A DNA stretch of 64,000 nucleotides from Octopus bimaculoides (taxonomy: Eukaryota). The stretch lies in NCBI RefSeq assembly GCF_001194135.2, contig NC_068984.1, forward strand, positions 15,435,549 through 15,499,548. Direction: 5' to 3'. Below the pieces are notes generated by a model. It saw only the letters and a list, made by a program, of their open reading frames with translations, was not told the origin of the DNA and ran no database searches. The translations under genes were made by a program, and so were the position numbers. Of the stretch, positions 1 through 43,971 are shown one piece after another (the stretch's first letter is position 1; each line of letters begins with the position of its first letter).

Positions 1-1270
1 GGCTCTGGTGGTAAAAACTGCTTAGACAACGAGAATATTTATGTTATCAGAAAATTAACTGAAATAACCTTCAATCATGTGGCCGATGTAGTTAGGCTTA
101 GTAACCTATTAGCTAAGTTCATTACAGTATTACAAAAGAATACAGACAAGATAACAAGGCAAAGGAAAAATACTCTCTATAAATAGGTACTACTAGAATG
201 AATAATTGAAACATTGGTTCTTTAAAGCTGGTAGTATATCAAATCACAGCAAAAAGAGAAAAACCTAAGAAAAATAAACAAAATATTCACTACATAAAAC
301 CAAAATTGNNNNNNNNNNNNNNNNNNNNNNNNNNNNNNNNNNNNNNNNNNNNNNNNNNNNNNNNNNNNNNNNNNNNNNTTTTTTTTTTTCTAATGGCATA
401 TCTCATGGGAGGGAGAATCGATATGCAGATTTCTCGGTACATCTTTACTTTCCATCAGGTAATAAACTTTCTAATTTCCAAGTATATTGCATTAAATTTT
501 ATGAAATTATTGTTATATAAATTTAAATAACAAAGCAGGTTTTTTGATGATTCTACATTCATTAAATTTTTTTTTTTAATGTTTAGCTAGAAATTTAGAG
601 ATTGCAACTTAATGAATGGTAGTCAGCAAAGTTTCCATCCTATTGTTATTATCTGATACAAAAGCAAACATAAATGTGTAAAAGTTTCTTTCACAAACAT
701 CTGTAACAGAACTCAATAAACATAATAAATTCTTCAGGGATTAGCATGTATTACTAACAATTATGCAGGGTAAGTCAGTAGATAATATTAAAAAATCAAA
801 ATTACAAAGGAAGCATAATTATGAGAACAATTCACACATGTTTGAGGATTACAAACAAGAGAGTACTCAATACATGTAACAGAGTTTAAATGGAAAGGCT
901 AAGGTGTAACTACTCAATGCTTATTCATTTTCAGTTGTTGCATATGTTGTTATTTTTTTACTCACTTGAATTATCACAATTAACAACAGAATGAATCATA
1001 ACTATATATAGCTTGGCTTTTTGCCTGGTCTCCAAGAACCCATATATATTAAAGGGAGGAGAACCGAATGCAGAATGCATGGTACCAAATGGATACCCCC
1101 AAAGCATTGTGCCAATGCTCTAACAATCCACCAGTTCATCACCCTAAATTGCTGCTATATATTTAACGAGCCCAGAAGTATGGATGGCAACGGTGACCTG
1201 GTTGGGATTTGAACTCAGAGGGCAGAAGGCCAGAACAAACAGTGATTCAAAGAACTCTGTGAATTCAGCA

Positions 1271-1272
<2 letters not shown>

Positions 1273-1321
<49 letters not shown>
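1273..1321. repeat. (GT)n microsatellite
   Basis: Direct reading. Confidence 0.95.
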
Positions 1322-1322
<1 letters not shown>

Positions 1323-2134
1323 CCTTATCCCTTTACCTAGAATCACTGCTCTACTCTATCTCCTATCCCTCCTTGATTATAGGGGCCACTTTAGCCTTGA
1401 AACTACAAGGTGATCTTCACTAGTCCAGTACCATGAAAAAAATTCTATACAATGTCAAGTGGTTGGTGTTAGGAAGGGNNNNNNNNNNNNNNNNNNNNNN
1501 NNNNNNNNNNNNNNNNNNNNNNNNNNNNNNNNNNNNNNNNNNNNTATATATATATATATATATAGCTTCTTCTTATATAGTATAATCTTACTTAGTATAT
1601 AGTATCAGTTACCACACTAATAAAACTATTTAATAAACAATTTAATAAACTATTTAATAAACTATTTAATAAACAATAAAATCATTATTTGAGAAGCCAT
1701 TAACTCAGGCAATTCTAAAATTCATAGTGTGAGTGTGAAAGAGAGAGAAAAGAACTCAGTTATAAGAAAGGCAGTATTTAAGTAAAAAGTTTATGGTATT
1801 GTGAAGTGATGCTCATAAAATGCAGAGTAAACAGAATTACAGAGATGAGCATTTAAAAAAATACAAAAAAAAATGTATATGAAACAAAAACAATGCACTT
1901 GTACATTATTTTTCACACTTTGCTATTTAGCCTCATCTTTACTTCTAAACATTTTATCACATTATTACAAGTAGATTGTTACAAAGCAAGTATCTTACTA
2001 TACATCCTGACCTTTTGTGACCTAAATAGACAGCCTGACTATCAGTACTTTGTGCATTGTTATAGGAATTTTGTTACGAAAGAGATTCTGATTCTTTGGT
2101 TAAAGGATGTAACTTAAGTTTAGAAACAAAATAT

Positions 2135-2172
<38 letters not shown>

Positions 2173-5131
2173 CATACATATATATATACATACATACATA
2201 TATGTGTGTGTGTGTGTGTGTAGTAAGAATCATTCTTTGGCAGATGAAACTTTTTCAATTTCCAATGAAATAATTACATTTCGAGAATAACAACACATAT
2301 GCCCATGCCAGCATAGTTAAATAGTTTATTGTGCAAATGTGATTCTGGGTTTGACCTCCACTACACAGCAGTTTTGGCAAGTGACTTGTATGCAAATTCA
2401 ACTTATAACAGAAAGACATCTATGAAATTTGGCAGAATGAAAACGGGCACAATCCTGCAGCATGTGTATATGCACATGTTGTCTACTTGTCCTGTAATTT
2501 AGCGATTTAAGAAAAAACCTCTGAAGGTGATATTCCAGCATGAGTAAAACAAGTTAAAGAATATACACATTAGATAAGCAAAATCTTGGCCTGTTTGAAG
2601 AACTGTTTTTTATTAAAGATTATAATTTCTCTCTCTCATGTGTACAAGCAAGTGGAAATGCATTTTTAGAAACTACCAAGGCTTCCTTTTGTAAGCATAC
2701 AATAGTTTTGCAAAACTGGGAATTGACAAAAGAGATCCTATGCTGCAAACATACACTCGCACAACCTTTAATTTTTTCAATAAAAATCAATAGAAAATAG
2801 CAAAATGTACGGGAGTTATTAAAACTGAAGCACAAAATCGTTTAAAGATATGTTTGAAAACCTACAAAGTGCAAAGCAACAACCCTAGCAAACAATAGCA
2901 GGAAGAAGGGGAAATTTTAATGAGTTTAGGCTTAGCTTAAATTAAAAAAAGGAAGTAAAACGCCCTTTGATGCTCATCTAATTTCTGTAACAATAAGCAA
3001 ATGAGAAAGAAATATCAGCTGTGCTGAATAGTGAGTATAAGACCTGGTATCTTTTATCTCAATAAACTAAGTAGAATTAAGTGTTTTGGTTTGAGAAACA
3101 ACACATCACATGACTCAAGATCTAATAGACAGATAACAGTGTTCCATCTACTGAGTAAAGATAGTAGCTCATTAAATTAAATAAAAATAGGCTTGGCTAT
3201 ACAGCCATGAACTATACAAGTAATGACTGCTTGTCTACTGTTTCTTACAGATATTGGCTGCAAAGTAGAATTGTAGAAACTATCAAGCAAGAACAGTTCA
3301 AATGGTGCAGTATTTGTATCTAAAGCTATTATAAAGAGCATAAAATTGAGAGTAAACAAATGACCAACAAGCTGAATTATTATCCACCGGTATCTGGTCA
3401 CACATGTTTTTATGTCAAAGACAATTAACTCTCAATGGTCCAAACTAATAATCTGCAAATAGCTACCAAAAATGAAGTATACATAATTCACTGAAGGAAA
3501 CAAGAGGCACTTCAATTGACAGTCGTATCGTGATTAACAAGCAGCACTATTTTCAAATTTCTTTCATAAGCAAACTATGGGAGATCCAAGAGAAATATCC
3601 TTTAATTTGACATCTTGAAAACTTAAATCAGCTGCAGCAATAGTGGTAGTTAAGAAAATGTATATCAATATATGCTCTGCTGCAACAAACTTCAAACTGT
3701 GTCAGCAATGTATATTGCAAATAAACAGGTTCACTTTCACAGTCATGAATTAAGAAAGTGAATTTGTAAATGGTATCTATACAAACAAAGCTACACATAC
3801 ACAAGAAACAAAATACTTGTGTAGATATTATCAAAGAAGCAATTACCAAAATAAATTCCTAAATTATCCTTAAGGTTATACCTCTTATATACACACATGA
3901 TAAAAAAAATTTGTGAGCTAAAATGGAAAATAGTCGATGAAAAAATTCAGAAGTTCAGCAATTGCAAATCTATTTTTATGAACATTATATCAACTACATT
4001 GCTACATGACTATTGAACTGTGTCAACTTTTACAATAACAATAGCTCTTCATTTACATAACAGAGCATTTCCAATTTCTTCCTTCTTGCTCTGAGCCAGC
4101 TAAGAATACTTGTAACATTTAACTATACATCAATAACAACCATAATGAAATACTAACACCATAGGGTGGAAAATTTAACAAAATGACATTATAGTTGGTG
4201 CTGTTTAGTATCAAATCAGCCTTGGTCAAGTAGAGTTACAGTCAAAGGCATTCAAGCCATCATCATTCAGCCTTTAACATCAAGGACAGCATCATTCAAT
4301 ATTATCCTGGTTTCACATCTTGGCATTTTGCTTTAAGGCAATTTGGTCATTTCTTCTAGACAGTCAAGTAGCTACATAAAGACTCTCCAATTATCAGATG
4401 AGCTAGATAATTCAATTGTAACTGAACATTTATTATTCTATTTTCTCGCGTTTCCTGACACTCCTCAAGCTTGATTAATTCAATGCAATGTGAATAAACA
4501 AGCATTACAGTTGACAATAAATGCTAAAGGGTTTTTAAAAAAGGATAAATAGTGGAAGCTAGTCTGCTAATATCCAATCAGCATTGTTCATGCTCAATGA
4601 TCCTGCAGTTATCTGATAGTTTACAAATACTTTCACTCAGAAAAACATAATTCACCAATACAATTAAGGAAGGACTCTTTAGTCTAGCTTCAGCAACACA
4701 ATGAAAAACAAGATACATTTTTCTGCACCGTTTATAGATTGTTGCAACATATCAGAATGAGGGAGATTCTTATGGAACTGAATGAAAATGCTTTTATGAC
4801 ACAAAATAGAGAAGATATCTTCATTTAATATATCCAACTTTTTTTTTCCCCCAGCTAAAAAAGCATTTCTACAGCCAAAAATAAAATAAAATAGAGCGAA
4901 TTTTAGCCAAAGACCATAACAAGAAATGGTCTTATTTTCATGTGAGAAATATAAATGAAGTGCAGGAAAGAAAAAGTTGTGCAAAGAATAATGGGCGTTT
5001 AAGCATAAACTTTTCATAAATAGCAAATAATAAACAAGAAGACCATGCTAACATTTAAAATCGAACTTTGTTGCTGCAAAAAGAGAAAGATATTAGATAT
5101 GAAGACAATTCCCTTAGTCTAAAGAACCTAC

Positions 5132-5198
5132 CTCGCAACATCCTTCACCTCAACACATTTCCCAAAGGTGCCTTCACCAAGGGTCTGAATAATTTCAT
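5132..5198 (-). CDS. CLK2: CLK2/Doa LAMMER kinase exon (kinase subdomain I, Gly-rich loop)
   Basis: Minus strand reads tttcag|AT GAA ATT ATT CAG ACC CTT GGT GAA GGC ACC TTT GGG AAA TGT GTT GAG GTG AAG GAT GTT GCG AG|gtaggt = (Y)EIIQTLGEGTFGKCVEVKDVA. It is 67 nt and completes the split Tyr codon (T|AT) from the upstream exon. LGEGTFG is typical of CLK/LAMMER kinases. Confidence 0.96.
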
Positions 5199-6675
5199 CT
5201 GAAATTAAATATAATGCTCAAATAATCCCTAGTATATGACAAATGGTACTGGTTAATTACCAGTTTAGAAAAACACTTCATAGCAATGCAACAAGAGGCT
5301 GGCAGCGAAACTACATAAAAACGGTATTTATCTTATTTTGAAAACTGAAAGGCTCAATGGATGAGAGTAAGTTACAGTTTTACAGCAATATAGTTTTCAT
5401 CCATTAGGATAGATTTAACACACTTTTGAAGTAGACAAATTAGCTTCATACTTGGGGTAAATGAATAAGACTTATGACAAATATATTTTAAGCTATCAAA
5501 TATGCACTGAAGCATCCAAATAAAGTACCTCATATATGAGAGGTCAGAGAACTTTAAAATAGTTTTTCATAGTAAATGCTTTAATGTATCCTAATATATT
5601 TCAACTAGTGATTGCTTTTCAACTAGCTTCTTAAAGCTATAAGCTATATATATGTATGGACATATAAAAATGCAAAAGTATTTTTTTTTTAAATAAAAGC
5701 TAGTATTGTTGTTCTGAAATGATGTTGAAAAGTATAATGAATACATTAAAGTCTTCGTTAAAAAATGTCTAAGGTGTGTATTTATCTGTACACATCACAG
5801 TATCTTCCAATATTATATGAAAATGTCAGATGTGTCCTTAAAGATTTTGACATATCTAATGAAACAAATTCTAATTTTCGTAGTTATATTCAGTTCAATG
5901 TATCAGATATGTTTCTAAGGCATGTAAAACATTAAGGACTGAAAATTTAATATATATATATATATATNNNNNNNNNNNNNNNNNNNNNNNNNNNNNNNNN
6001 NNNNNNNNNNNNNNNNNNNNNNNNNNNNNNNNNNNNNNNNNNNNNNNNNNNNNNNNNNNNNNNNNNNNNNNNNNNNNNNNNNNNNNNNNNNNNNNNNNNN
6101 NNNNNNNNNNNNNNNNNNNNNNNNNNNNNNNNNNNNNNNNNNNNNNNNNNNNNNNNNNNNNNNNNNNNNNNNNNNNNNNNNNNNNNNNNNNNNNNNNNNN
6201 NNNNNNNNNNNNNNNNNNNNNNNNNNNNNNNNNNNNNNNNNNNNNNNNNNNNNNNNNNNNNNNNNNNNNNNNNNNNNNNNNNNNNNNNNNNNNNNNNNNN
6301 NNNNNNNNNNNNNNNNNNNNNNNNNNNNNNNNNNNNNNNNNNNNNNNNNNNNNNNNNNNNNNNNNNNNNNNNNNNNNNNNNNNNNNNNNNNNNNNNNNNN
6401 NNNNNNNNNNNNNNNNNNNNNNNNNNNNNNNNNNNNNNNNNNNNNNNNNNNNNNNNNNNNNNNNNNNNNNNNNNNNNNNNNNNNAATTTCTTAAAATCAA
6501 AATAAATAATTAAATTTATCAAAAGGTGGGAGAATTTAATGAAACGCAAAAAAAAAATTTTATGAGACAAATTATGTTTTGGAGAAATTGAAAATAAAAA
6601 AGCTATCGCCCCAGTTGATTTAGAAACAAAAATATGCTAGATATTTCATACAGGGATATGAAATATATATATATG

Positions 6676-6706
<31 letters not shown>

Positions 6707-7789
6707 ATATCAAGAGTAGTCTAGTATACAACACTTGATTTTTAAGCTACACTGCAGACGTGGAAGACGCAAATTCTTGTTTCAAGTGTTTATAATAACA
6801 AAAAATAATATGGAAATATCTTCAGTATAATTTAAATCCACTGAACATCATTAAATTAATTAATTATTTAGTATTAAAACTAACATTATTTCAAGTTTAC
6901 ATCTTCTACAACACAGTTTAAATCTTAAAAAGGGCATTGAAAATATGAGAATTAAAAAAAAAATTTAAACCAACTACTCATTGATTGTAACTAAAATTTG
7001 CTAACTCTATCCAAACAATTACTATATTAAAAAATCAATTTGTCCTAATTGTATTTCAAGATAAAACTTAGCAATTATTACCCCATCTTTTAAATTAACA
7101 TTATGAAATCAAAATTTCACTAAGCTTTCGGTTATTGCCATTTATTTATATCTTTCCATTTATTTTATTTTAATGCATATTCAAAGAGTAATTAAATTTT
7201 TTTTTTTTTTATATTTTAAAAATTAATCCATAAAATACTAAAATATTAAATTTAAGTGTATTTTATAGGAATGTGTTTATAAGAAAGAATGAAAAATGCA
7301 TTCATTTTTCAGCAGTTTATATTTCAATTAAAAATAATAGAACTAATGCCTACAAAAGATGGCATGGTTCAAATATAGTTGATCTTCCAATAGTTAGAAG
7401 ACCAAGATAAAAACAATCATATATACAATAGGCATTAAAAAAAACTTAGGATAAATTTAAATCAAGAAAAATGTGTAATTTTGGATATCCCCCAACCCAA
7501 ATTTTTTAATTTTAAATTCTTATAGAAAGAATAAAAATGACAATAGAAGGGGAAATTAGATTAGAGATAAGGAAATGTTAAAGAGAGAAATAAAGAAAGT
7601 TGAATTTTAGGATTTAAGAAGAAAATTGGGGGAAGGGGTAAAAGAAACAAAGATAAACAAAAACATTAATACATTTTTGGGAAAAATTGGAGAAAAAAAA
7701 ATTCAGGAAAAAATGGAAAAAAAAAAAATGAAAAAAAAAAAAAGAAGTCAAATAATATCCTAGGCTAAACGTTACGAAATGATGAGTAC

Positions 7790-7886
7790 ATCGAGCCTGA
7801 AGAACGTCTCCCGGGTGATAGATCAGGTGACCATCTTCGTCGTCCTCGATGCAGGGCGCTCCAGCAATGAGTTCAGGGTGGTCCTG
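7790..7886 (-). CDS. CLK2: CLK2/Doa exon equivalent to vertebrate CLK exon 4
   Basis: acag|CAG GAC CAC ... = QDHPELIAGAPCIEDDEDGHLIYHPGDVLQAR+T, ending CGAT|gtactc. The DDxxGHLIY motif is diagnostic of the segment just before the CLK kinase domain. 97 nt (94 nt with the second NAGNAG acceptor). Confidence 0.95.
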
Positions 7887-8766
7887 CTGTTTGTGTCCGC
7901 CCCAACGTATTTCATCCCCCATTCATTCATTCAGCAGCACATATCATTCCCCAGCAAGCGAACGTATCAATCAGATGGGTGAGCAGCAGTAGAGTTCGTT
8001 CACATCCGTAGCACCGAATTTTTCAATGCCGCAACAGTGAGGCCAGCCAATTCAGGGTACATATGAGATAAACAAGGGTAGGCAAGGCCAAGTAAAGATA
8101 GTGTCACATACAAGCAACAAAAGATTTCAAAAAAACAAATGTATATAGATATATTTATATATATATTGAGAGATAAGAGACATGTAAGATCACTTTAAAG
8201 CCAAGTGGGGATCAATATTTTAAGAATTTAATTTTTCATGCAGTATCAATAAATTATTAAATTGCTTATCTATGGATTGTTTTTTACACCAAAAATATTT
8301 ATCATACAACTGAAATCAGCATAATTGAATAAAAGCTATTTACTAATATATTAATAAAGCATTTAAATATCATTATGACAAAATTAAAAGGCAAGAATGT
8401 ATATATATTTAACAAAACAATGTAGCAATAGAATTAAATATTACAAAATGAACTAAAGAAATAAAAATGAATATTTAATTGTATAGAATAGCTTCAAAGA
8501 ATACATATAAATATACAAAAAAAAGTTATATCAATGATGCAATTTTAGCAAAAAAAATAAATAAATAAAAATAACACTGACAATCATATTGAATTACAAG
8601 TTAAAAATATATATCTCAATGACATTAAATTTAGTTAAATCACAAATGCAGGGCTGTCAGGTATTTAAGGTTCAGTTCATGGTTGACCCTCAACATGGAA
8701 GTATTTATGGAAATACCTTCCCTAATGAAAAGAGAAATAAAAACATTCCAAAAAGACCTTGATTAC

Positions 8767-8768
<2 letters not shown>

Positions 8769-8845
<77 letters not shown>
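8769..8845. repeat. (AC)n microsatellite
   Basis: Direct reading. Confidence 0.95.
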
Positions 8846-9996: not shown

Positions 9997-10032
<36 letters not shown>

Positions 10033-10899: not shown

Positions 10900-11330
10900 C
10901 TCTGCTTTATTTCCTTCACTTCCTCCACCAACGGAGAAGTGATGAAAGTAGCCAAAACCAATGCTACTGTTCCTCACCTAAGCAACACAACTTTAGTTGA
11001 TTAAGGTTTTTGCCTGTCTCAACTCTTGTATTAAAAGTTTCTTATTAGACTACCTCCATTGCAGCATGTCCTAAGGACAAACTGCTGTTTCCAGCTCCCA
11101 TATCAACACTTGGTTATACACCAGAGTGCAGTTATGACATACACACACTTTCTTCTGGTTTAATAATGGACTTGTTAATTCAGACAGACATACCGCTTAT
11201 GCACACGGCAACACCCTTCATTCCCATTTAAATTTCTGTACATAAATGTCATCCACTTGTTAAACTGGACACCCGGCATCAGTTATGCACTACTTCCATG
11301 AATATATACATTGAGAATGTCATCAAATAG
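10900..11330 (+). mobile_element. Degenerate non-LTR retrotransposon reverse-transcriptase remnant
   Basis: Broken frames resemble RT motifs (CIKSFLLDY ~ WIKSFLSDR; ...HTAYA ~ YADD region), with many stops. Confidence 0.4.
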
Positions 11331-11504
11331 TGGAGAGGCACTGTGATCTAGCTTCTCTTCAACATCAGACAGAAAACTGCAACACGCACAAGGTTCCCTT
11401 CCTTAAAGAGCCAAAAATCAATTGAAATTTTCACTAAAGTACTACCTACACATCTAAAAGTAAAAAACAAATGTGCTGTTTTTACACATTCAAACACTGT
11501 AGAC

Positions 11505-11783
11505 CATAGGTTCTCAAATTGGGCACTAAATGTGGGTATTGAGGAGGTCCAAGTAAGCACTAGTGTCTATGGGAGTGGTAGAGAAAAAGGGGTCATTGGG
11601 AGAAAGGCAATGGATTAAGTTGATGCTAGGAGTTTATATTATTATAGTATTGTATATAAATTATATATCATATTAAATATCAAATGAATCATAGTATATA
11701 TAAATTAGTAAAATATTTATACATTAAAAATATGAATGGGGGTGCTGAGTGGGGTGGTGGCCCAAAAAGTTTGAGAACCTCTG
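11505..11783. mobile_element. hAT (Charlie-like) MITE
   Basis: TIRs cataggttctcaaa ... tttgagaacctctg. 8-bp TSD ctgtagac (11497-11504) / ctgtaggc (11784-11791). Confidence 0.8.
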
Positions 11784-13208
11784 CTGTAGGCAGACAAAAG
11801 AGACTTACGTGGCCAATGGCATTGACTCATTCACTAATACATTATAATCACTAGTTCAAATAGGATCTACCAGGATCATCTTTTGTCAAAGCCCCTGCTC
11901 AACTGAAGCAGTTGGCTGCATGCAATCTGTCTCAGCCCACCTGATGCAACGGATTTCAACATCCCCTACCACAAAGGCTAAAGACAATTTTAAAAATATT
12001 TTCTCAAAGTTACATCTGAATAAGATGCTAATGTCAGAAAATCTTGGTGTCAACCCCCAAGAGTTAGATTAACAACAGAAAAGAATGAAGAATTGTGACC
12101 CTAGAGGATCACAAAGTCCTCCCCATCGCCTGAACGGGACAAATGAACAATTATCCAACACCTAAATAGCTCATTCATTCAGACTTTTCCTTTTTATATA
12201 TCCACAAATCCTTGGGAATATAAAAAATTTACATTACTCTAAATAATTTACAGAATTAATTAAGACAAATAATTCAAATTGGAATTATTTATTTACATGA
12301 CTGCAAATACAACTTTTTAAAATTTTAACTTTAAATACATGAACATCTTAATCCTGATTATGTTCCCAATATTATCAGAAAAGTTTGAAAGAAAATAGAA
12401 TTTCTAATATAGTTACAATGTTTCTGGAGCTGTATCATAGTCACAGAAAATACTGGATAGAAAACTAAATAAATGTGTTTTAAATACAATTAAAAAAAAA
12501 AAACACTTACAATAAACCACTTACAATTATGTAATAAGCAAGCATTATGAAAGCAACTGAGAAAACTACTAAATGTTTCTCTAGCAGAAACAAATGATTT
12601 GTTAGATCGAAACAAAGTGAGAACTATTTCAGTTAATAAAAATTTGACAGCATACCAAAAGGTCAAAATTAGGTCCTTATTAACCAATGATGATATCTTC
12701 AAGAATTTCCAGTAGCTTAACAATTAAACACACAGAAATTACCATACTAAGATTAAAATTTGGAGAACTCAGCCATAAGTTTGAGCTTCTAAAGTGTTTA
12801 AATTTCTATTTGCTCTAAGGAAAGATTCTAATTCCAAATTAAAATGGAAAGAGACCCTTAGTTAAATCAATGGACTTACTATTTCCTGTTGTGTAGAAAC
12901 ATAAAAGCAGAAAAAAGTCTGAAGTAGTTTGAAAAAGAATGTGTATATGTTGAGAGACAGAGAGAGTCACACAGCCAGAGATACAAAGTTTGTGAGCAAA
13001 AAACAAAATTTTCAATGGATGGGATGATAAAAGCTAGATTGGGATTGGGAGAAAATTAATTTAAGTAAAGCAGAAAATGACTTTTTGCAAAGTTTAGGAG
13101 TGGAAATGAAAATAGTGAGACATAATGCAAATGAAAAGAAGTCTGCCAAATTGAAAACATAGTGGCCAAGAGTTCACAATTGAATCTGGAAATAGTATGA
13201 GTCAGGCT

Positions 13209-14915: not shown

Positions 14916-17899
14916 GACACATCTTTACATTTATATCTGTTTGTTTTTATATTGAGTTATAATAAAATCAATTAAACAAAAGAATTACTCAATACTTTTT
15001 GTACAGTATCAATTTATTTTACAAGAAGTAGAGTAACAGTGAATTCAAAGTTTCAATCTGGAAGCCTTCAAATAGATAGTCCAAACTAAGGCTGGCAGGC
15101 CAAAACATAGAAGTGATTGACACCTCTTTTCTTATAAAAGTGTTAAATATATACTTGAATTAAGAATGACAACTATATTTAAATGAATTTCTTTTTCAAT
15201 CATTCTAATATTTGTTACTCGAAGAAAGCGATAATAAACTTTAGAGTGTTTAACACCTTTCCACATAAATAAAAACAAAAACTAGTGATTAAGTTTACAT
15301 GGATGATATACATACTTAAATAATATCTGGGTGAATATTGCAGAGCAAGAAACAAATTCTAGCAAGTTGTGTTTATGATTCACTTTTGATTCCCAGTTTA
15401 ATGACATTTCATCTCACTTATGCCACTAATGCCCTTGGGAAAGGTATGTCACAATTTCTCTTTCTCTACACCCTTGAAATGTAGGGCAGCTGTGCCTAAT
15501 CAAAAAGAAACCAATATTTAAATAACCTGAACTGAAATTGAAACAATTCAAGCCATTTGATAAGTTAAAAACTATAATAAACAAGTCTAGCTATAGTTTA
15601 CGATAAAAACATTAGGCATAAGCTTGTGTAGTTAACTATCTTGGAGAAGATACTTTAATAGTAGCCAGACAGTAAAGGCCGTAATCTTATACTAGTGTTT
15701 ATAAGAATAGCAGAATAGCAGATAAGTGGAGCAAGTAGAAACATAGGAATTCAAGAAAATGAAGTTTCTAGGATAGATTGCAAAGTTGTAATCACAAGAA
15801 CTAACATCATCCACCAGCACCAAAACATCAATTAAATAAAATTTTAATATTTTGGTTTTACCAAAGTGTACTAGACTGAAATAAGTACCGGAATTTATAA
15901 TTGACTAAACTATGGAAGGCAGTAGTGCAATCTCTAAGACTGAAATTTGTAAATGAATACTTCTAAAAAGTTTTGTCCATACTTGGAAATTGTTATCAAT
16001 AACATTGTAACCTTAATGTAATCAACACTAATAACACCTCAAGTCCAACGTTAACACACTGAGAGAAAAGCAATAACCATAACAAAGAAAGTAATAATGA
16101 CCGTGACAATACTATTCCACTAAATTACTGAAAGTATAAACAAACATGAAAAAAGATTCCAAACTAAAATGTTTCAAGATCTCGTGAGAAAGCAAAGAAA
16201 GGTAGAACAACAAGATGCTGGTGACTCCAATCAAAACAGACAATTGCACACCTGCTTTCAAGAGGAGTAAAGAGGGAAAGTTAAGAGAAGAATTCGAAAA
16301 CAGTTTTAATTGAACTTTTTTCAATTTCAGAAGGGGTGGGAGGGGAAGGGGGGATATTATCGATTTCTTTTAATACGAAGGACTAATATTTTAAGGAATT
16401 AAGTGAAATCTAACTAGTATAAAGCAAACCTGATGAGATAACTATTCNNNNNNNNNNNNNNNNNNNNNNNNNNNNNNNNNNNNNNNNNNNNNNNNNNNNN
16501 NNNNNNNNNNNNNNNNNNNNNNNNNNNNNNNNNNNNNNNNNNNNNNNNNNNNNNNNNNNNNNNNNNNNNNNNNNNNNNNNNNNNNNNNNNNNNNNNNNNN
16601 NNNNNNNNNNNNNNNNNNNNNNNNNNNNNNNNNNNNNNNNNNNNNNNNNNNNNNNNNNNNNNNNAAATATGCTAACCCAACCATAGGCACCTCAGAAGCA
16701 CAATTGATTAAGAACATAGGAAAAGACAAATAATGTCCATGAAGCATCCCATATTATCTCACACACGCAAAACTTTTCTCTAGTGTTAAGACTATTGAAA
16801 TCTTTCTTCAAAATTAGTGATTGCCACACAACAAGGGAGCATCTTTTTTTTTTGTTTGCTTTTTAATTGCTCAAGTTATGTCAGCATGCTGTAAACTTGA
16901 TAAATAACCTAGTTTTATTATTTCTTTTTAATATGGACAGCTAATTAAAATATATTAGTAAATGAATTATTTTGCAGTTAATGAGCCAAAAACAATGTTA
17001 TGGACAATAATAACCAAATGCACAATCACTCATTCAAAAAAGCAAGACAAGTATTTTGCAACATTCCTTGTAAAGTTTCCTATGCATTGTATTCTTGCCA
17101 ATTAATGAAGTATTCCCTATTTTGGTAGATAACTCAGTCACAGTAGGCATCCCTAATTTGAACTTAGATGTTTCTTGGTTAATGTTATGGTTAGTTATGA
17201 AATTATACTTATAGCTGGGGACTTCGTACTTCCGTACGAGATTGTAGTTCATCTAGTGAAAGAGAAGCATTAAGATAATATACTTTTTCTTTTTTGTAAA
17301 CTATGTGCAAAAAGAAAAAATATTAATTTAAGCAACAAGGCATGAAAAAAAGCTAGCTAGCAATTATGAAAAATATGTGCAGAAAGCATAGCTAACAACA
17401 GTGAAAGATTAAAGCAGATATACAAATTTTTACAAAGCTAAAAATGGTAGAATGCAATGAAAATGTATACAGGTCTATATACATATATATATGTGGTCAA
17501 ATTATCCATCCCCCACCAAAAAATAAATAAATATAAAAAACATATAATAGTCGAAAATTAACAAATTACACTTTCAAATAATTTAATAGAAACTATCTTG
17601 ATTTATCAGAAATAAACTTGTAACTGTCATTGGGGCATGGAAATAGAAAAAGTTTTCAGTTGGAGGTAGGGGGTTATTGTCAGTTGAGAAGAAGGCAACC
17701 AGAACTTTTACATTCCCTTAGATACCATTTCAAAAATTTATCTAATATCACAGCTTATTCTAAGAAAGTTCATGAATCTAAAATATAGCAATGCACTCTT
17801 TTCAAACACACACACATGCAAACCACACACACACACACACAAACAGATCTTATAATTTTATTCAAAATTAAGTGAAACTTGAAAATATCCTATACCTAC

Positions 17900-18103
17900 C
17901 TTTTTTGATGAGTTAGTAGTTGATAGAGAAGTGTCGTTGTTGTTATTATTATTGATAGCAGTTATAGAATCTGTAGTTGTTGAAGTAGTGGTTGTAGTGG
18001 TAGCAGTAATAGAGTTATTATTTAGAGATGTAGTCGGGCTATCCGTAGAAGAAGTAGGCATATTTGCCCATTCTTTGTATGCCGTAAGGACATCAACTTT
18101 CAT
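17900..18103 (-). CDS. Candidate alternative N-terminal coding exon of CLK (Thr/Ser/Asn-rich, RS-less isoform)
   Basis: ATG at 18103 gives MKVDVLTAYKEWANMPTSSTDSPTT...SSKK (68 codons), ending AAG|gtaggt in phase 0, which fits the 7886 exon. Candidate acceptor attttttcag at 18173-18174. CpGs are retained locally. Confidence 0.65.
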
Positions 18104-18835
18104 TTTATACAAAAATTCCACATCTGTGACTACGAAATTCTTTCAGCAAGTATAATGTATTCCAACAACTAACTGAAAAAATGTTTTCTTTCTTTTCTTT
18201 TTTTTTTCGATAAGTTTTATTTTGTCCTTCCTAAATATATGGAACCACAGTAACCCAAAATAGGAATAACTGTTGAACAGTACTCAAAAGGCAAAATAAA
18301 CGGAGAGAATGTGTGTGTACATGTACATATGTTTGTGAATGTAAGGGCCAGCATGCAGATGTTCCAAAAGGAAATAGAAGGGGAGGGGGGCAGCTTCCTG
18401 AACAGATGAAAATTAAGTTTCTTATTGCCCCCTCCTCCACTGGTTAATGGAGTTTCTTATAAGTTCTACAGTCTTGACTGGGCAAGAGGCAAAGATAGAC
18501 TGGTAGCAAGTGAGGTAGCTAGCTTAGTCGATTCAGGCACTATTAGAATTGCAGAACACCAATAATTCTCTGCTAAAACAGGAGGGGGCACAAAAGACTA
18601 AAAAGTTGGTGAAACACATACATACACATACATACAAAGAGAGGCAGTAATAGACACTCCCATTGCATATACACTCACTCACTCTCTTTCTCTCTCAAGT
18701 GTAAATGTATATTTAGTAGTCAGCCCTGGTATCAGCTTGAATTTCATCCCTTATCACAAACATGTGCTACTGATGCTGGATAGAAGCTCCATAACCTTTA
18801 GTGAGCCAACCTAAAGTCTACATTCCACCACAAGC

Positions 18836-20707: not shown

Positions 20708-22208
20708 ACTCCCACTACCATAGAATAAAGATGACATTGATGACTCCAAAATCAGCAGCTGCTAAAGGAAGTGAGAAAAGGCTGAAAAAACACTGGCATT
20801 CAAAATCCATAATCATTGCAACAAGAATTGTGTTGAATTTTTCACTGAAAATCAGAAATTTATCAAATTATTCAACTGAAACATCAAAAGTAAATATCAT
20901 TAATATTAAGTAGAGCAAAATAATATTACTATCATTCATGTTGATGCTGATTTCAATTGTAAGACATTTTAATAGCAATTCTTATTAATCAATGAACTGA
21001 GAAGAAAAAAACAGTCAGAAATCATTTTTTTTTTTTTTTATTATTGAAAATAGACAACAATTGAAACTAGAAAAGGATAGTTAATTAAGCTTAATATCAT
21101 ATTGAAAGGATAATTATCAATAACTGATGAAGAGAAAATTTAAAAAGCTGATCCCCATTTATCTGAGAAAGTGTCATTTGAAGTAAAGAGCAAGGAATAA
21201 TGTCTCTTGAATATATTTTTCCTTTTTTTTTTTTTTAATTTTAACTTTTTTTTATATATATTTTTTTAGTGAATATGAAGATGCATCTTACCTGCTCCCG
21301 TATATTTAGATAGTAGCAAGCAAACTTTAGCTTGCTACTATCATCATCCAGCACAGAGAAGTAAAAACAAAATGTTTATGACTTTTTTTTTTTTCTTTAA
21401 TTAAGACTCAAACCTAACAGACAAAGTCAGGTTTAAATCTTCGCATGCACCGCTTTCAATTAAATTAGGTAGATTCTCTTAGTCAGGCTAAATATATATA
21501 TATGTATATATATATTATAAATGTAGCCAGCATTGTAGAATTAAGAAACCAACAGAACTTTAAATCTAATAAAATAACACTAATTATTATTGTTCATTAT
21601 AAGAACTTTGCAATGGGGGTTTATATATAAAGGTTCTCAGAATACTTAGTGGGGTTGCTTACTTTATTAATTCTTACAGAATTGNNNNNNNNNNNNNNNN
21701 NNNNNNNNNNNNNNNNNNNNNNNNNNNNNNNNNNNNNNNNNNNNNNNNNNNNNNNNNNNNNNNNNNNNNNNNNNNNNNNNNNNNNNNNNNNNNNNNNNNN
21801 NNNNNNNNNNNNNNNNNNNNNNNNNNNNNNNNNNNNNNNNNNNNNNNNNNNNNNNNNNNNNNNNNNNNNNNNNNNNNNNNNNNNNNNNNNNNNNNNNNNN
21901 NNNNNNNNNNNNNNNNNNNNTTATTTTATGTTTTTTTTTCCTTTTGATTTTTTTTTTTTTTTTTTTTAAATCATTTTTAAGAATAAACTAGATTTTTAAT
22001 GAAATTAAAGTTGGAAATAGTAAATATCAGAAACATAGATTGCAGATGGGGACTGGACAGAGAATGAATATATAAAATAAATAGAAAAGGCTCTTAATAG
22101 TAAAGAGCCAAGGGAGCGGTTAGGGCCAAGGTAGAGTAAGATTTGTTTTCCTGATCAATGTCGATTACCTATAATAAATAATTGAAAATACCCAATAAGT
22201 CTACTCAC

Positions 22209-22455
22209 CCGACTTGACTGAGAACTGTAAGATGGCCGATGGTGCCGGTAGCTTCTACGATACTTCTTTCGCTTGTAAGATCTGCTATGGCCACTGCTTT
22301 CGTGTGAATGGTAATGACTGCTGTGATCAGAATCATGGTAGCTGTGGCGACTTGAATAATTTGTACGATCTGGACTATAGGAATTTTCATCAGAATGGGC
22401 CCTGTCACGATGATGATGATAATGATGATGGTGCCGTCTTCTTCTTCGATCAGGA
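22209..22455 (-). CDS. CLK2: CLK2/Doa RS/His-rich N-terminal exon
   Basis: ttttattccag|T CCT GAT CGA...AGT CGG|gtgagt encodes PDRRRRRHHHHYHHHRDRAHSDENSYSPDR...RPSYSSQSSR. 247 nt, phase 2 in and phase 0 out, matching both neighbouring exons. Confidence 0.94.
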
Positions 22456-31599: not shown

Positions 31600-32760
31600 G
31601 ATCATGTGAAAGACATGAGAGGGTCTTAGCTCAACTAATTAGGGAAAGAGTTACTTTAGATGAGATGCAGTTTGGGTTTGTGCCAAGGAGAAGCACCACT
31701 GACACTATATTTCTGGTAAGGCAGCTGCAGGAGAAATTCCTAACCAAAGATAAACCTCTGTACTTCGCTTTCGTTGACATGGAGAAAGCCCTCGACAGGG
31801 TCTCCCAATCCCTTATCTGGTGGTCAATGTGGAAACTAGGGATAGATGAGTGGTTGGTGAGAGAAGTGTACAAGCCATGTACGGGGATGCTGTCAGTAAG
31901 GTGAGGGTTGGCAACAAGTATAGTGAAGAATTCTGGGTAGAAGTAGGGGCTCGTGAAGAATCAGTCCTAATTCATCATAGTCCTCCATGCAATAACAGAG
32001 GAATTCAAGACAGGATGCCCCTGGGAGCTCCATGCTGATGACCTTGCTCAAATAGCTGAGAGAAGAAGTTTCAGGTGTGGAAGCAAGGTCTAGAATTGAA
32101 GGGGCTTAAAGAGTCAATCTAGCAAAAATCAGTCTTAGTACGTAAGAGGGCAGACAAATCACAAATCTCTTCAGGTAGATGGCCTTGCTCGATCTGTAGA
32201 AAAGGTGTAAGTAGAATCTCCATAAGATGTATCCAGTATAAGCTATGGACACAAAAGAGGTGCAGCAATATCAAAAGGTTAACTGGGAAGATAGATTGTG
32301 TGTGTGGCAAATGCACAGCAACAATAAACACCAAAGATGTGCAGAAAACAGATTCCGTCACATGCCAGTGCCACATGACTGATCCCATGCCGGTGGGACG
32401 TAAAAAGCATCTTTTGAGCATGGTTGTTGCCAATGCCACCTGACTGGCTCCTGTGCCAGTGGCACATAACAAGCACCATTCAAGCGTGGTCATTATCAGT
32501 GCTGCCTGACTGGCTCCCATGCCAGTGACATGTAAAAAGCAACATTTGAGCATGGCCGATGCCAGTAATGCCAGACTGGCCCCCATGCCAGTGGCACGTA
32601 AAAAGCACCCACTACATTCTTGGAGTAGTTGGCGTTAGGAAGGGCATCTAGCTGTAGAAACCTTGCCAGATGAGCTTAGGCAGCCTCCTGGCTTGCCAGT
32701 CCTCAGTCAAACCGTCCAACCCATGCCAGCATATCTGCTAGCATGGGAAAATGGACATAA
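31600..32760 (+). mobile_element. Internally deleted RTE-clade LINE (RT fragment, Cys-rich finger, 3'UTR)
   Basis: DEMQFGFVPRRSTTDTIFLVRQLQEKFLTKDKPLYFAFVDMEKALDRV is RTE RT. It is followed by a WPCSICRKGV...C finger, ~65-bp tandem repeats and the ccaacccatgccagcat tail. Frameshifted. Confidence 0.9.
32378..32600 (+). repeat. About four tandem copies of a ~65-bp unit in the RTE 3'UTR
   Basis: gactggctcccatgccagtggcacgtaaaaagcac-like unit at about 32378, 32442, 32509 and 32574. Confidence 0.8.
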
Positions 32761-34060: not shown

Positions 34061-34191
34061 CTTCTGGAATGCTTCTGATAATCATAATCTCTAGTGGCTT
34101 TTCTTCTTTTTGATTTGCAATATCCATATGCGTCATCATCATAAGGAGAATCTCGACTAGGAGATCTGCGCCTTCGACGTGATTTTGGCAT
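34061..34191 (-). CDS. CLK2: CLK2/Doa first canonical coding exon (start codon at exon boundary)
   Basis: tttttgttccag|ATG CCA AAA TCA CGT CGA...TCC AGA AG|gtatgt = MPKSRRRRRSPSRDSPYDDDAYGYCKSKRRKATRDYDYQKHSR. 131 nt. Phase 2 joins the T of the 22455 exon to give Ser. Confidence 0.92.

Positions 34192-43932: not shown

Positions 43933-43971
<39 letters not shown>
43892..43971. repeat. Compound (GGTA)n-(GT)n microsatellite
   Basis: Direct reading. Confidence 0.95.

Follow-up and report, generated by a model that had tools for sequence, protein, structure and literature searches.

The window analyzed here, a stretch of 64,000 nucleotides from the Octopus bimaculoides genome (NC_068984.1, positions 15,435,549 to 15,499,548), carries on its reverse strand exons 2 to 5 of a gene that, to judge by its sequence, is a CLK orthologue, i.e., a CLK/LAMMER splicing kinase, and in which exon 4 appears as a genuine CLK exon-4 homologue. 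This exon is present in essentially all spliced mRNA of the data examined, and its splice-site weakness, the 304-nt AG-free zone upstream of it and its local conservation exceed chance, unlike the frameshift that its skipping would cause. In the reading that we favor, and for which we see about even prospects, exon 4 would depend on SR-type activators under CLK control, and slow, adjustable removal of the flanking introns would set the output of kinase-coding mRNA. The features on which the argument turns are the following (window coordinates; the minus sign marks the reverse strand and the slash an exon border or splice position).

7790..7886 (−), or from 7883: exon 4, 97 or 94 nt, encoding (Q)DHPELIAGAPCIEDDEDGHLIYHPGDVLQAR and the first base of a Tyr codon
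7884..7889 (−): tandem acceptor CAG/CAG; splicing after 7887 gives the 97-nt form (additional Gln), splicing after 7884 the 94-nt form
7784..7792 (−): exon 4 donor, GAT/GTACTC, with 4/9 matches to CAG/GTAAGT and no G at −1 or +5
7889..8192 (−): AG-free zone, 304 nt, directly upstream of the exon 4 acceptor
7520..7761 (−): U/C-rich AG-free tract, 239 nt, beginning ~30 nt past the weak donor; second longest AG-free gap of the strand
7765..8110 (−): conserved GC-rich block of exon 4 and its upstream flank; no fixed difference in organisms C and F, two in organism D
22209..22455 (−): exon 3, 247 nt, His/Arg/Ser-rich, ending in ...SSQSSR in phase 0, donor CGG/GTGAGT; joined to exon 4 in RNA
17900..18103 (−): alternative upstream exon eX, with an ATG at 18103–18101 and a 68-codon Thr/Ser/Asn-rich open reading frame (ORF) ending in ...NSSKK in phase 0, donor AAG/GTAGGT
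5132..5198 (−): exon 5, 67 nt, encoding (Y)EIIQTLGEGTFGKCVEVKDVA(R), the glycine loop of the kinase, donor GAG/GTAGGT
5145..5147 (−): TGA of the predicted skip frame (+1), 17 codons into exon 5; the exon 5/6 junction follows after 13 nt, and further junctions lie beyond it

The exon boundaries are defined by RNA. The runs used were X22, a stranded poly(A) library from a sister species (organism F, 95–99% alike) in which junctions were counted from loose read ends at exon edges, and the contig runs X1, X2 and X9, which are transcript assemblies, X1 and X2 being from the window's own species. In X22, exon 3 joins exon 4 at 7886 with 22 reads and at 7883 with 8 reads, and eX joins the same two positions with 11 and 6 reads, respectively. 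Both AGs of the tandem acceptor are thus in use, with 33 vs 14 reads overall (a ratio of ~70:30); the ratio is 65:35 from eX and 73:27 from exon 3, with too few reads to separate the two. On the downstream side, 35 of 35 X22 reads join 7790 to 5198, the same join is found in 60-nt junction contigs of X1, X2 and X9, and CGAT/GTACTC is the sole donor seen used for exon 4. A contig with the exon 3/4 junction is found in neither X2 nor X9, despite the deep exon 4/5 junction there. The original prediction, made from the DNA letters, had proposed an exon of 97/94 nt with the donor CGAT/GTACTC and a CAGCAG acceptor that adds or omits one Gln; the reads bear out the boundaries 7886/7883..7790, sequence and RNA junctions agree on the donor, and the counts at both NAGNAG junctions establish the two acceptor forms.

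The signals that define this exon are poor, and the sequence upstream of it is exceptional. Its donor is the weakest of the gene, with 4/9 consensus matches vs 7/9 in four other donors. In the acceptor context, ACAAACAG/CAG/GACCAC, the preceding 20 nt hold 6–7 pyrimidines with a longest run of 2, the mean for all AGs of the strand being 9.9. The 304-nt zone is the longest of the 3343 AG-to-AG gaps on the strand (mean 16.3), and none of 20000 shuffles was without an AG. A pyrimidine-rich tract lies far from the acceptor, at ~8130–8050, and candidate yUnAy branch sites have their A at 8093, 8069, 8064 and 8038, while the last 160 nt before the acceptor are rich in purine/G-runs and UGCU and without a pyrimidine tract. 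AG exclusion zones are a sign of distant branch points and are associated with alternative splicing (Gooding et al. 2006, PMC1431707); in every case studied by experiment the exon is alternatively spliced, and the zone contains regulatory elements (PMC1431707). By its sequence, the zone in front of exon 4 implies a putative distant branch point, roughly 150–300 nt upstream of the exon. The tract at 7520..7761 may act as an intronic enhancer or silencer. We rejected a structure resembling an RNA thermometer, since the fold is no more stable than those of shuffled sequences (z = +1.39).

The conserved block comprises exon 4 with 220 nt or more before it and 25 nt or more after it; among the close relatives compared, conservation is absent at the 3′ end of intron 4. 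The GC content is 0.49 in the flank and 0.58 in exon 4, compared with ~0.30 for the window. Neighboring sequence differs by 2–4% between sister species. In organism F, the block has 0 differences in ~288 nt vs 27 in ~990 nt elsewhere (13 differences in 22100–22451, 8 and one indel in 5122–5418, 6 and three indels in 17850–18190), which by our own arithmetic corresponds to about P = 0.001; in organism C, it has 0 in 346 nt vs 5 in 252 nt elsewhere (the 5 differences lying in 5169–5420). Further, a fraction of 0.83–0.96 of the 31-letter words of 7700–7960 is present in runs of organisms A–F, whereas neighboring intron stretches list organism A only; organism A is the window's own species, its DNA runs containing 100% of the words sampled. 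No Rfam family reached threshold in 7600–8800, and an intronic small RNA was accordingly rejected as the source of the conservation or coverage of the flank. A dispersed repeat was likewise rejected as the origin of the flank, as only microsatellites match elsewhere in the window.

The RNA signal is raised at the ends of the introns on both sides of exon 4, but unevenly along intron 3. The depths in X22, all of them on the strand of the gene, are as follows.

Intron 3 (−), first 109 nt: depth ~20 vs exon 65
Intron 3 (−), last ~190 nt: depth 8–14 vs exon 60
Intron 4 (−), last 220 nt: depth 5–8 vs exon 44
Intron 2 (−), end: depth 0 vs exon ~60
Intron 5 (−), start: depth ~1 vs exon 43

The signal beside exon 4 thus reaches 13–30% of exon depth, as against at most 2% at introns 2 and 5. 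The contig runs give a similar picture for intron 4: the depth from exon 4 into intron 4 is 19.7, 76 and 33, compared with 155, 344 and 61 at the exon 4/5 junction, and the depth from intron 4 into exon 5 is 37.8, 43.6 and 60.6, i.e., intron 4 has a share of 11–50% of the spliced depth in the three runs. The presence of 31-letter words in RNA assemblies was also tried as a retention test and failed, the mid-intron 3 control being present as well. A lariat intermediate was considered for the flank reads that end near the candidate branch sites and set aside, since the lariat loop would be covered too.

In the mechanism that we propose, exon 4 would be definable only with the help of enhancer-bound SR-type proteins, which are CLK substrates, and the removal of both flanking introns would therefore be slow and adjustable. 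A share of the transcripts would wait in an unproductive, partly spliced state, and the level of kinase-coding mRNA would follow SR-protein phosphorylation, in a negative feedback as in mammalian CLK1/4. Full skipping of exon 4, giving a 143-residue kinase-less product or a target of nonsense-mediated decay (NMD), would be a minor outlet at most at steady state. Several points weigh against this mechanism. The regulation is read from anatomy alone, and conservation was measured among close relatives alone, with few substitutions in total. The exon 4 region is not unusually structured (z = +1.39). The X22 signal in the upstream flank stops at ~8088, and intron 4 is without reads over its first 25 nt; X2 and X9 have no contig at 17850–18190, so that intron 3 is not uniformly present. 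The RNA assemblies of this highly expressed gene contain most of mid-intron 3, and some of the signal may be ordinary pre-mRNA. Finally, introns 3 and 4 measure 14.3 kb and ~2.6 kb here vs 871 and 387 nt in mouse, and because they are so much longer, the detention of whole introns becomes less plausible.

Three other explanations have to be weighed, which partly overlap with intron-based control of exon 4 and with one another. The original prediction saw in exon 4 a skip switch, in which CLK activity or temperature would cause the exon to be left out and the resulting mRNA would be either cleared by NMD or kinase-less, and hence invisible at steady state; we regard this as rather unlikely. The frameshift on which it builds is confirmed by the sequence: skipping joins ...SSR to MKLFRPLVKAPLGNVLR and a stop at 5147–5145 (−), which lies 17 codons into exon 5 in an NMD-type position with junctions downstream, and the predicted product is kinase-less and has 143 residues. 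As an event, skipping found no support in the few samples examined, in which NMD was not blocked, and a rare isoform that NMD clears or that arises under certain conditions may still exist. None of the 35 X22 reads that enter exon 5 at 5198 comes from exon 3, from eX or from anything but exon 4 (agreement 1; 95% upper bound ~8% by our own calculation); the depth at this entry is 43, ~5 of it continuing from the intron, and one X22 loose end at exon 5 that was not displayed is most likely the exon 5/6 junction, which the contig runs show. No skip path is present in the X1, X2 and X9 assemblies, where just two paths enter exon 5, namely the exon 4/5 junction, at depths of 155, 344 and 61, and intron 4 in unspliced form, at depths of 38, 44 and 61. 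Exon 5 has no excess of depth over exon 4 (~45 vs ~60 in X22), and the protein collection has no entry identical to the 143-residue product, which is a weak argument. The mammalian skipped form, in turn, is readily seen without a block of NMD. What speaks for a switch, apart from the position of the stop, is that weak sites and a large AG-free zone predispose to skipping (PMC1431707), that the mammalian skipped form is an NMD target stabilized by cycloheximide (PMC3187705), and that the raw-read test leaves room for skipping up to ~8%; the contig test is a weak one, as assembled contigs drop minor paths and the same assemblies lost even the 94-nt form, which accounts for ~30% of reads. Of the wider claim that exon 4 is a regulated exon of the CLK1/2/4 type, the homology, the weak sites, the AG-free zone, the conserved block and the raised intron signal stand, and the skipping does not. 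The prediction also overlooked eX, which is unannotated, and the intron-retention side of the mammalian circuit, which the data resemble more.

Exon 4 might instead be simply constitutive, with weak sites offset by enhancers without regulatory meaning, conservation due to the encoded peptide and to chance, and intron reads due to pre-mRNA; this we consider unlikely. Inclusion is indeed complete in all data seen, mid-intron 3 is found in RNA assemblies as well, and the conservation contrast is built on ~30 substitutions in total. Lengths not divisible by 3 are found in about two thirds of internal exons, and a frameshift on skipping is therefore unremarkable alone. Such an exon would leave the 304-nt AG-free zone, the extreme of 3343 gaps and never reached by shuffling, as an accident, and it sits poorly with a non-coding flank that is also without substitutions and with an intron signal that, within one stranded poly(A) library, is 13–30% beside exon 4 vs at most 2% at introns 2 and 5; moreover, the same exon is regulated in vertebrates (PMC3187705, PMC11346455). 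An internal promoter, which we deem quite improbable, would make the conserved flank in part promoter or leader, with transcripts that start ~200 nt or more upstream of exon 4 and run into it unspliced. The predicted kinase would lack the N-terminal domain and start at ATG 7922 as MGDEIRWGGHKQ-QDHPELIAG..., in frame and preceded by a TGA, and such a promoter would be compatible with control through the flanking introns. The depth of the X22 flank falls from 14 to 0 over 8004–8089, like the 5′ end of a transcript and with no AG there to serve as an acceptor, X2 and X9 have contigs of flank plus exon 4 and none at 17850–18190, and the ORF from ATG 7922–7920 is in frame with exon 4; Drosophila Doa uses alternative promoters, as cited in PMC12795684. 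Against this, flank contigs of organisms A and C reach further upstream, to 8251, 8337 and ~8792 (the last in X2, ending in (CA)n), RNA runs contain all words of 8111–8800, several short ORFs lie ahead of ATG 7922, the end of coverage at 8088 may stem from a sequence difference in organism F, and the flank has only 6–20% of exon depth in X1, X2 and X22. A TATAAATA motif occurs at 8159–8152 (−) in an AT-rich repeat, upstream of the tapering flank reads; taken together, the taper at ~8088, ATG 7922 and TATAAATA hint at a possible transcription start inside the gene, the alternative being that the sequence of the sister species is broken here.

The assignment of the gene to the CLK family rests on the segment that enters the kinase domain, the rest of the domain lying outside the window. 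The peptide of exons 4–6 has its best match in human CLK2 (residues 138–195, E = 3.6e-16), followed by CLK1, CLK3 and CLK4, while other CMGC kinases score weakly, DYRK and PRP4 reaching only 1e-4 to 4e-3. Exon 4 encodes the ...EDDEDGHLIY...AR/Y segment directly before the kinase domain, as in CLKs, and its phase-1 boundary at ...AR/Y is presumably identical to that of vertebrate exon 4. A protein search with the 180-residue N-terminus returned five distant CLKs only and no close relative of the gene. The comparison loci L001 and L002 are intron-less (P0004 on a contig of a compact eukaryote), and a metagenome scan gave one distant match, which has no introns either. According to a phylogeny from 2025, molluscs have a single CLK gene (PMC12795684).

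The remaining exon map and the continuity of the mRNA are as follows.

34061..34191 (−): exon 2, 131 nt, beginning at an ATG right after its acceptor (ttgttccag/ATG), encoding MPKSRRRRR..., MPKSRRRRRSPSRDSPYDDDAYGYCKSKRRKATRDYDYQKHSR(S), donor AAG/GTATGT
5968..6484: assembly gap inside intron 4 (7789..5199)

Exon 3 is covered by a 407-nt contig of X1 that consists of 30 nt of exon 4 and 377 nt upstream of it and reaches exon 2. With exon 4 included, the reading frame runs ...SSR(Q)DHPELIAGAPCIEDDEDGHLIYHPGDVLQAR/YEIIQTLGEGTFGKCVEVKDVA, and exon 5 starts with ATGAAATTATTC. The mRNA joins 7790 directly to 5198 and keeps the Tyr codon T/AT across the gap, and its frame and continuity are therefore settled; the gap is purely intronic and hides no exon of the main isoform. 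No further kinase exon was found within 1..5131, and the next exon (NGQIAALKII...), read from RNA loose ends, lies outside the 64-kb window. Intron 4 also contains position 5323, at which the window has G and X1, X2, X9 and X22 have A, i.e., a minor allele or an assembly error. In intron 2, a 66-nt tandem repeat (3.8 copies, 75% match) at 32363–32609 yields a spurious long ORF on the minus strand. Microsatellites of the (CA)n and (TA)n type are found at 8769–8845, 9999–10030, 1273–1321, 43935–43971 and 6680–6745, and transcript contigs end there.

Exon eX was located via loose ends that match 17906–17935 (−) and ends with ...AACTCATCAAAAAAG/GTAGGT at 17900. It splices in frame to both exon 4 acceptors, with 17 junction reads and an exon depth of 25–56 in X22, and a 1423-nt contig of X1 extends the transcript of the eX region upstream to ~19320; no contig at 17850–18190 was found in X2 and X9. 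Where species differ by indels in eX, the lengths are multiples of three. The exon probably serves as an alternative first exon, from which a CLK isoform lacking the RS/His-rich N-terminus would be made.

Two observations concern transcripts that leave the main splicing path elsewhere in the gene. X22 reads pass the exon 3 donor (22100–22208, −) at ~30% of exon depth, while none are seen at the end of intron 2; the predicted read-through would add VSRLIGYFQLFIIGNRH and a stop to the RS domain, and it may reflect intron retention or intronic polyadenylation, yielding a kinase-less product by a route other than skipping. In mid-intron 3 (11000–13000), 77–95% of the sampled words are present in many RNA assemblies of the same species, although X2 and X9 lack a contig at 17850–18190; RNA may be enriched in the 3′ part of intron 3, or a separate transcript may come from 11000–13000. 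Outside this gene, CLK transcripts of another invertebrate group (L003 2205–2304, a Logan contig carrying P0001; also P0002, P0003 and P0005) keep a ~98-nt intron. In L003, the retained intron (GTGAGT...TTTTTAG) lies in the kinase domain right after ...KRATEQ and splits the ORF, and four protein clusters stop there, a hint that elsewhere in animals another CLK intron is retained recurrently.

CLK kinases are proposed thermometers of alternative splicing. If exon 4 is controlled through slow removal of its flanking introns, as we favor, a weak, conserved exon with retained neighboring introns in a mollusc would push the origin of the feedback module back to the bilaterian ancestor and would offer an entry point to temperature-dependent RNA processing in an ectotherm, and the 304-nt AG-free zone is a concrete cis-element open to mutation. 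Tentatively, and with more doubt than confidence, the CLK exon-4 cassette may be seen as an ancient bilaterian feedback device and not a vertebrate or endotherm invention; in this mollusc, the device would rely on intron detention and a distant-branch-point acceptor, and CLK output would be adjusted to the ambient temperature of an ectotherm. Should the exon prove constitutive, what is left is merely a correctly annotated CLK exon with a tandem acceptor; interest would grow if a perturbation or a temperature series showed regulation. In the literature, no paper on this exon was found for any invertebrate.

The closest known system is that of mammalian CLK1/4. In mouse and human, nuclear polyadenylated RNA retains the two introns that flank exon 4 (introns 3 and 4), and heat shock or inhibition of CLK leads to their splicing; mRNA that lacks exon 4 is targeted by NMD, and the conserved exon with its proximal introns is sufficient as a cis element (PMC3187705). 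Across vertebrates, the conservation of exon 4 and its introns is extreme, which a review ties to endothermy (PMC11346455). An exonic enhancer and the 3′ splice site are the points at which SR proteins and TRA2 act (PMC11571805). The octopus gene resembles mammalian CLK1/CLK4 (Duncan 1997, as cited in PMC3187705; Ninomiya 2011, PMC3187705; PMC11346455) in gene family and in the position of the exon before the kinase domain, in an exon length that is not a multiple of 3, with skipping truncating the protein before the kinase, and in the unusual conservation of the exon and its proximal intron sequence; over-representation of both flanking introns in poly(A) RNA relative to the other introns of the gene may be a further resemblance, the signal being raised at their ends. 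It differs in that skipping, abundant in mammals, is not detected here (at most ~8%), in intron lengths of 14.3 kb and ~2.6 kb compared with 871 and 387 nt in mouse, in the tandem CAGCAG behind a 304-nt AG-free zone, and in the two alternative upstream exons that feed exon 4; regulation, too, is proposed here on anatomical grounds.

With the unproductive-splicing elements of SR protein genes, which are ultraconserved (PMC11346455), exon 4 shares the setting in a splicing-regulator gene, conserved non-coding sequence around one exon and a feedback logic; those elements, however, are poison exons whose inclusion is unproductive, whereas inclusion of exon 4 is the productive choice. The two used AGs, 3 nt apart and with one Gln gained or lost, are like those of other NAGNAG tandem acceptors (PMC3250501; PMC1431707) and nothing unusual. 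In Drosophila Doa, isoforms arise from alternative promoters (Kpebe and Rabinow 2008, as cited in PMC12795684), and as in the octopus gene alternative upstream exons place different non-catalytic N-termini on one kinase core; the Doa N-terminal exons have no sequence relation to those found here, where the start of eX is a candidate and its use is sample-dependent (found in X22 and X1 but not in X2 or X9). Compared with known distant-branch-point exons (PMC1431707), exon 4 has the same far pyrimidine tract with branch-like sites and the same long AG-free filler of non-pyrimidine, potentially regulatory sequence, its zone exceeding the 100 nt used to define the class; the studied members of that class are alternatively spliced, whereas exon 4 is always included, and its branch sites are sequence candidates.

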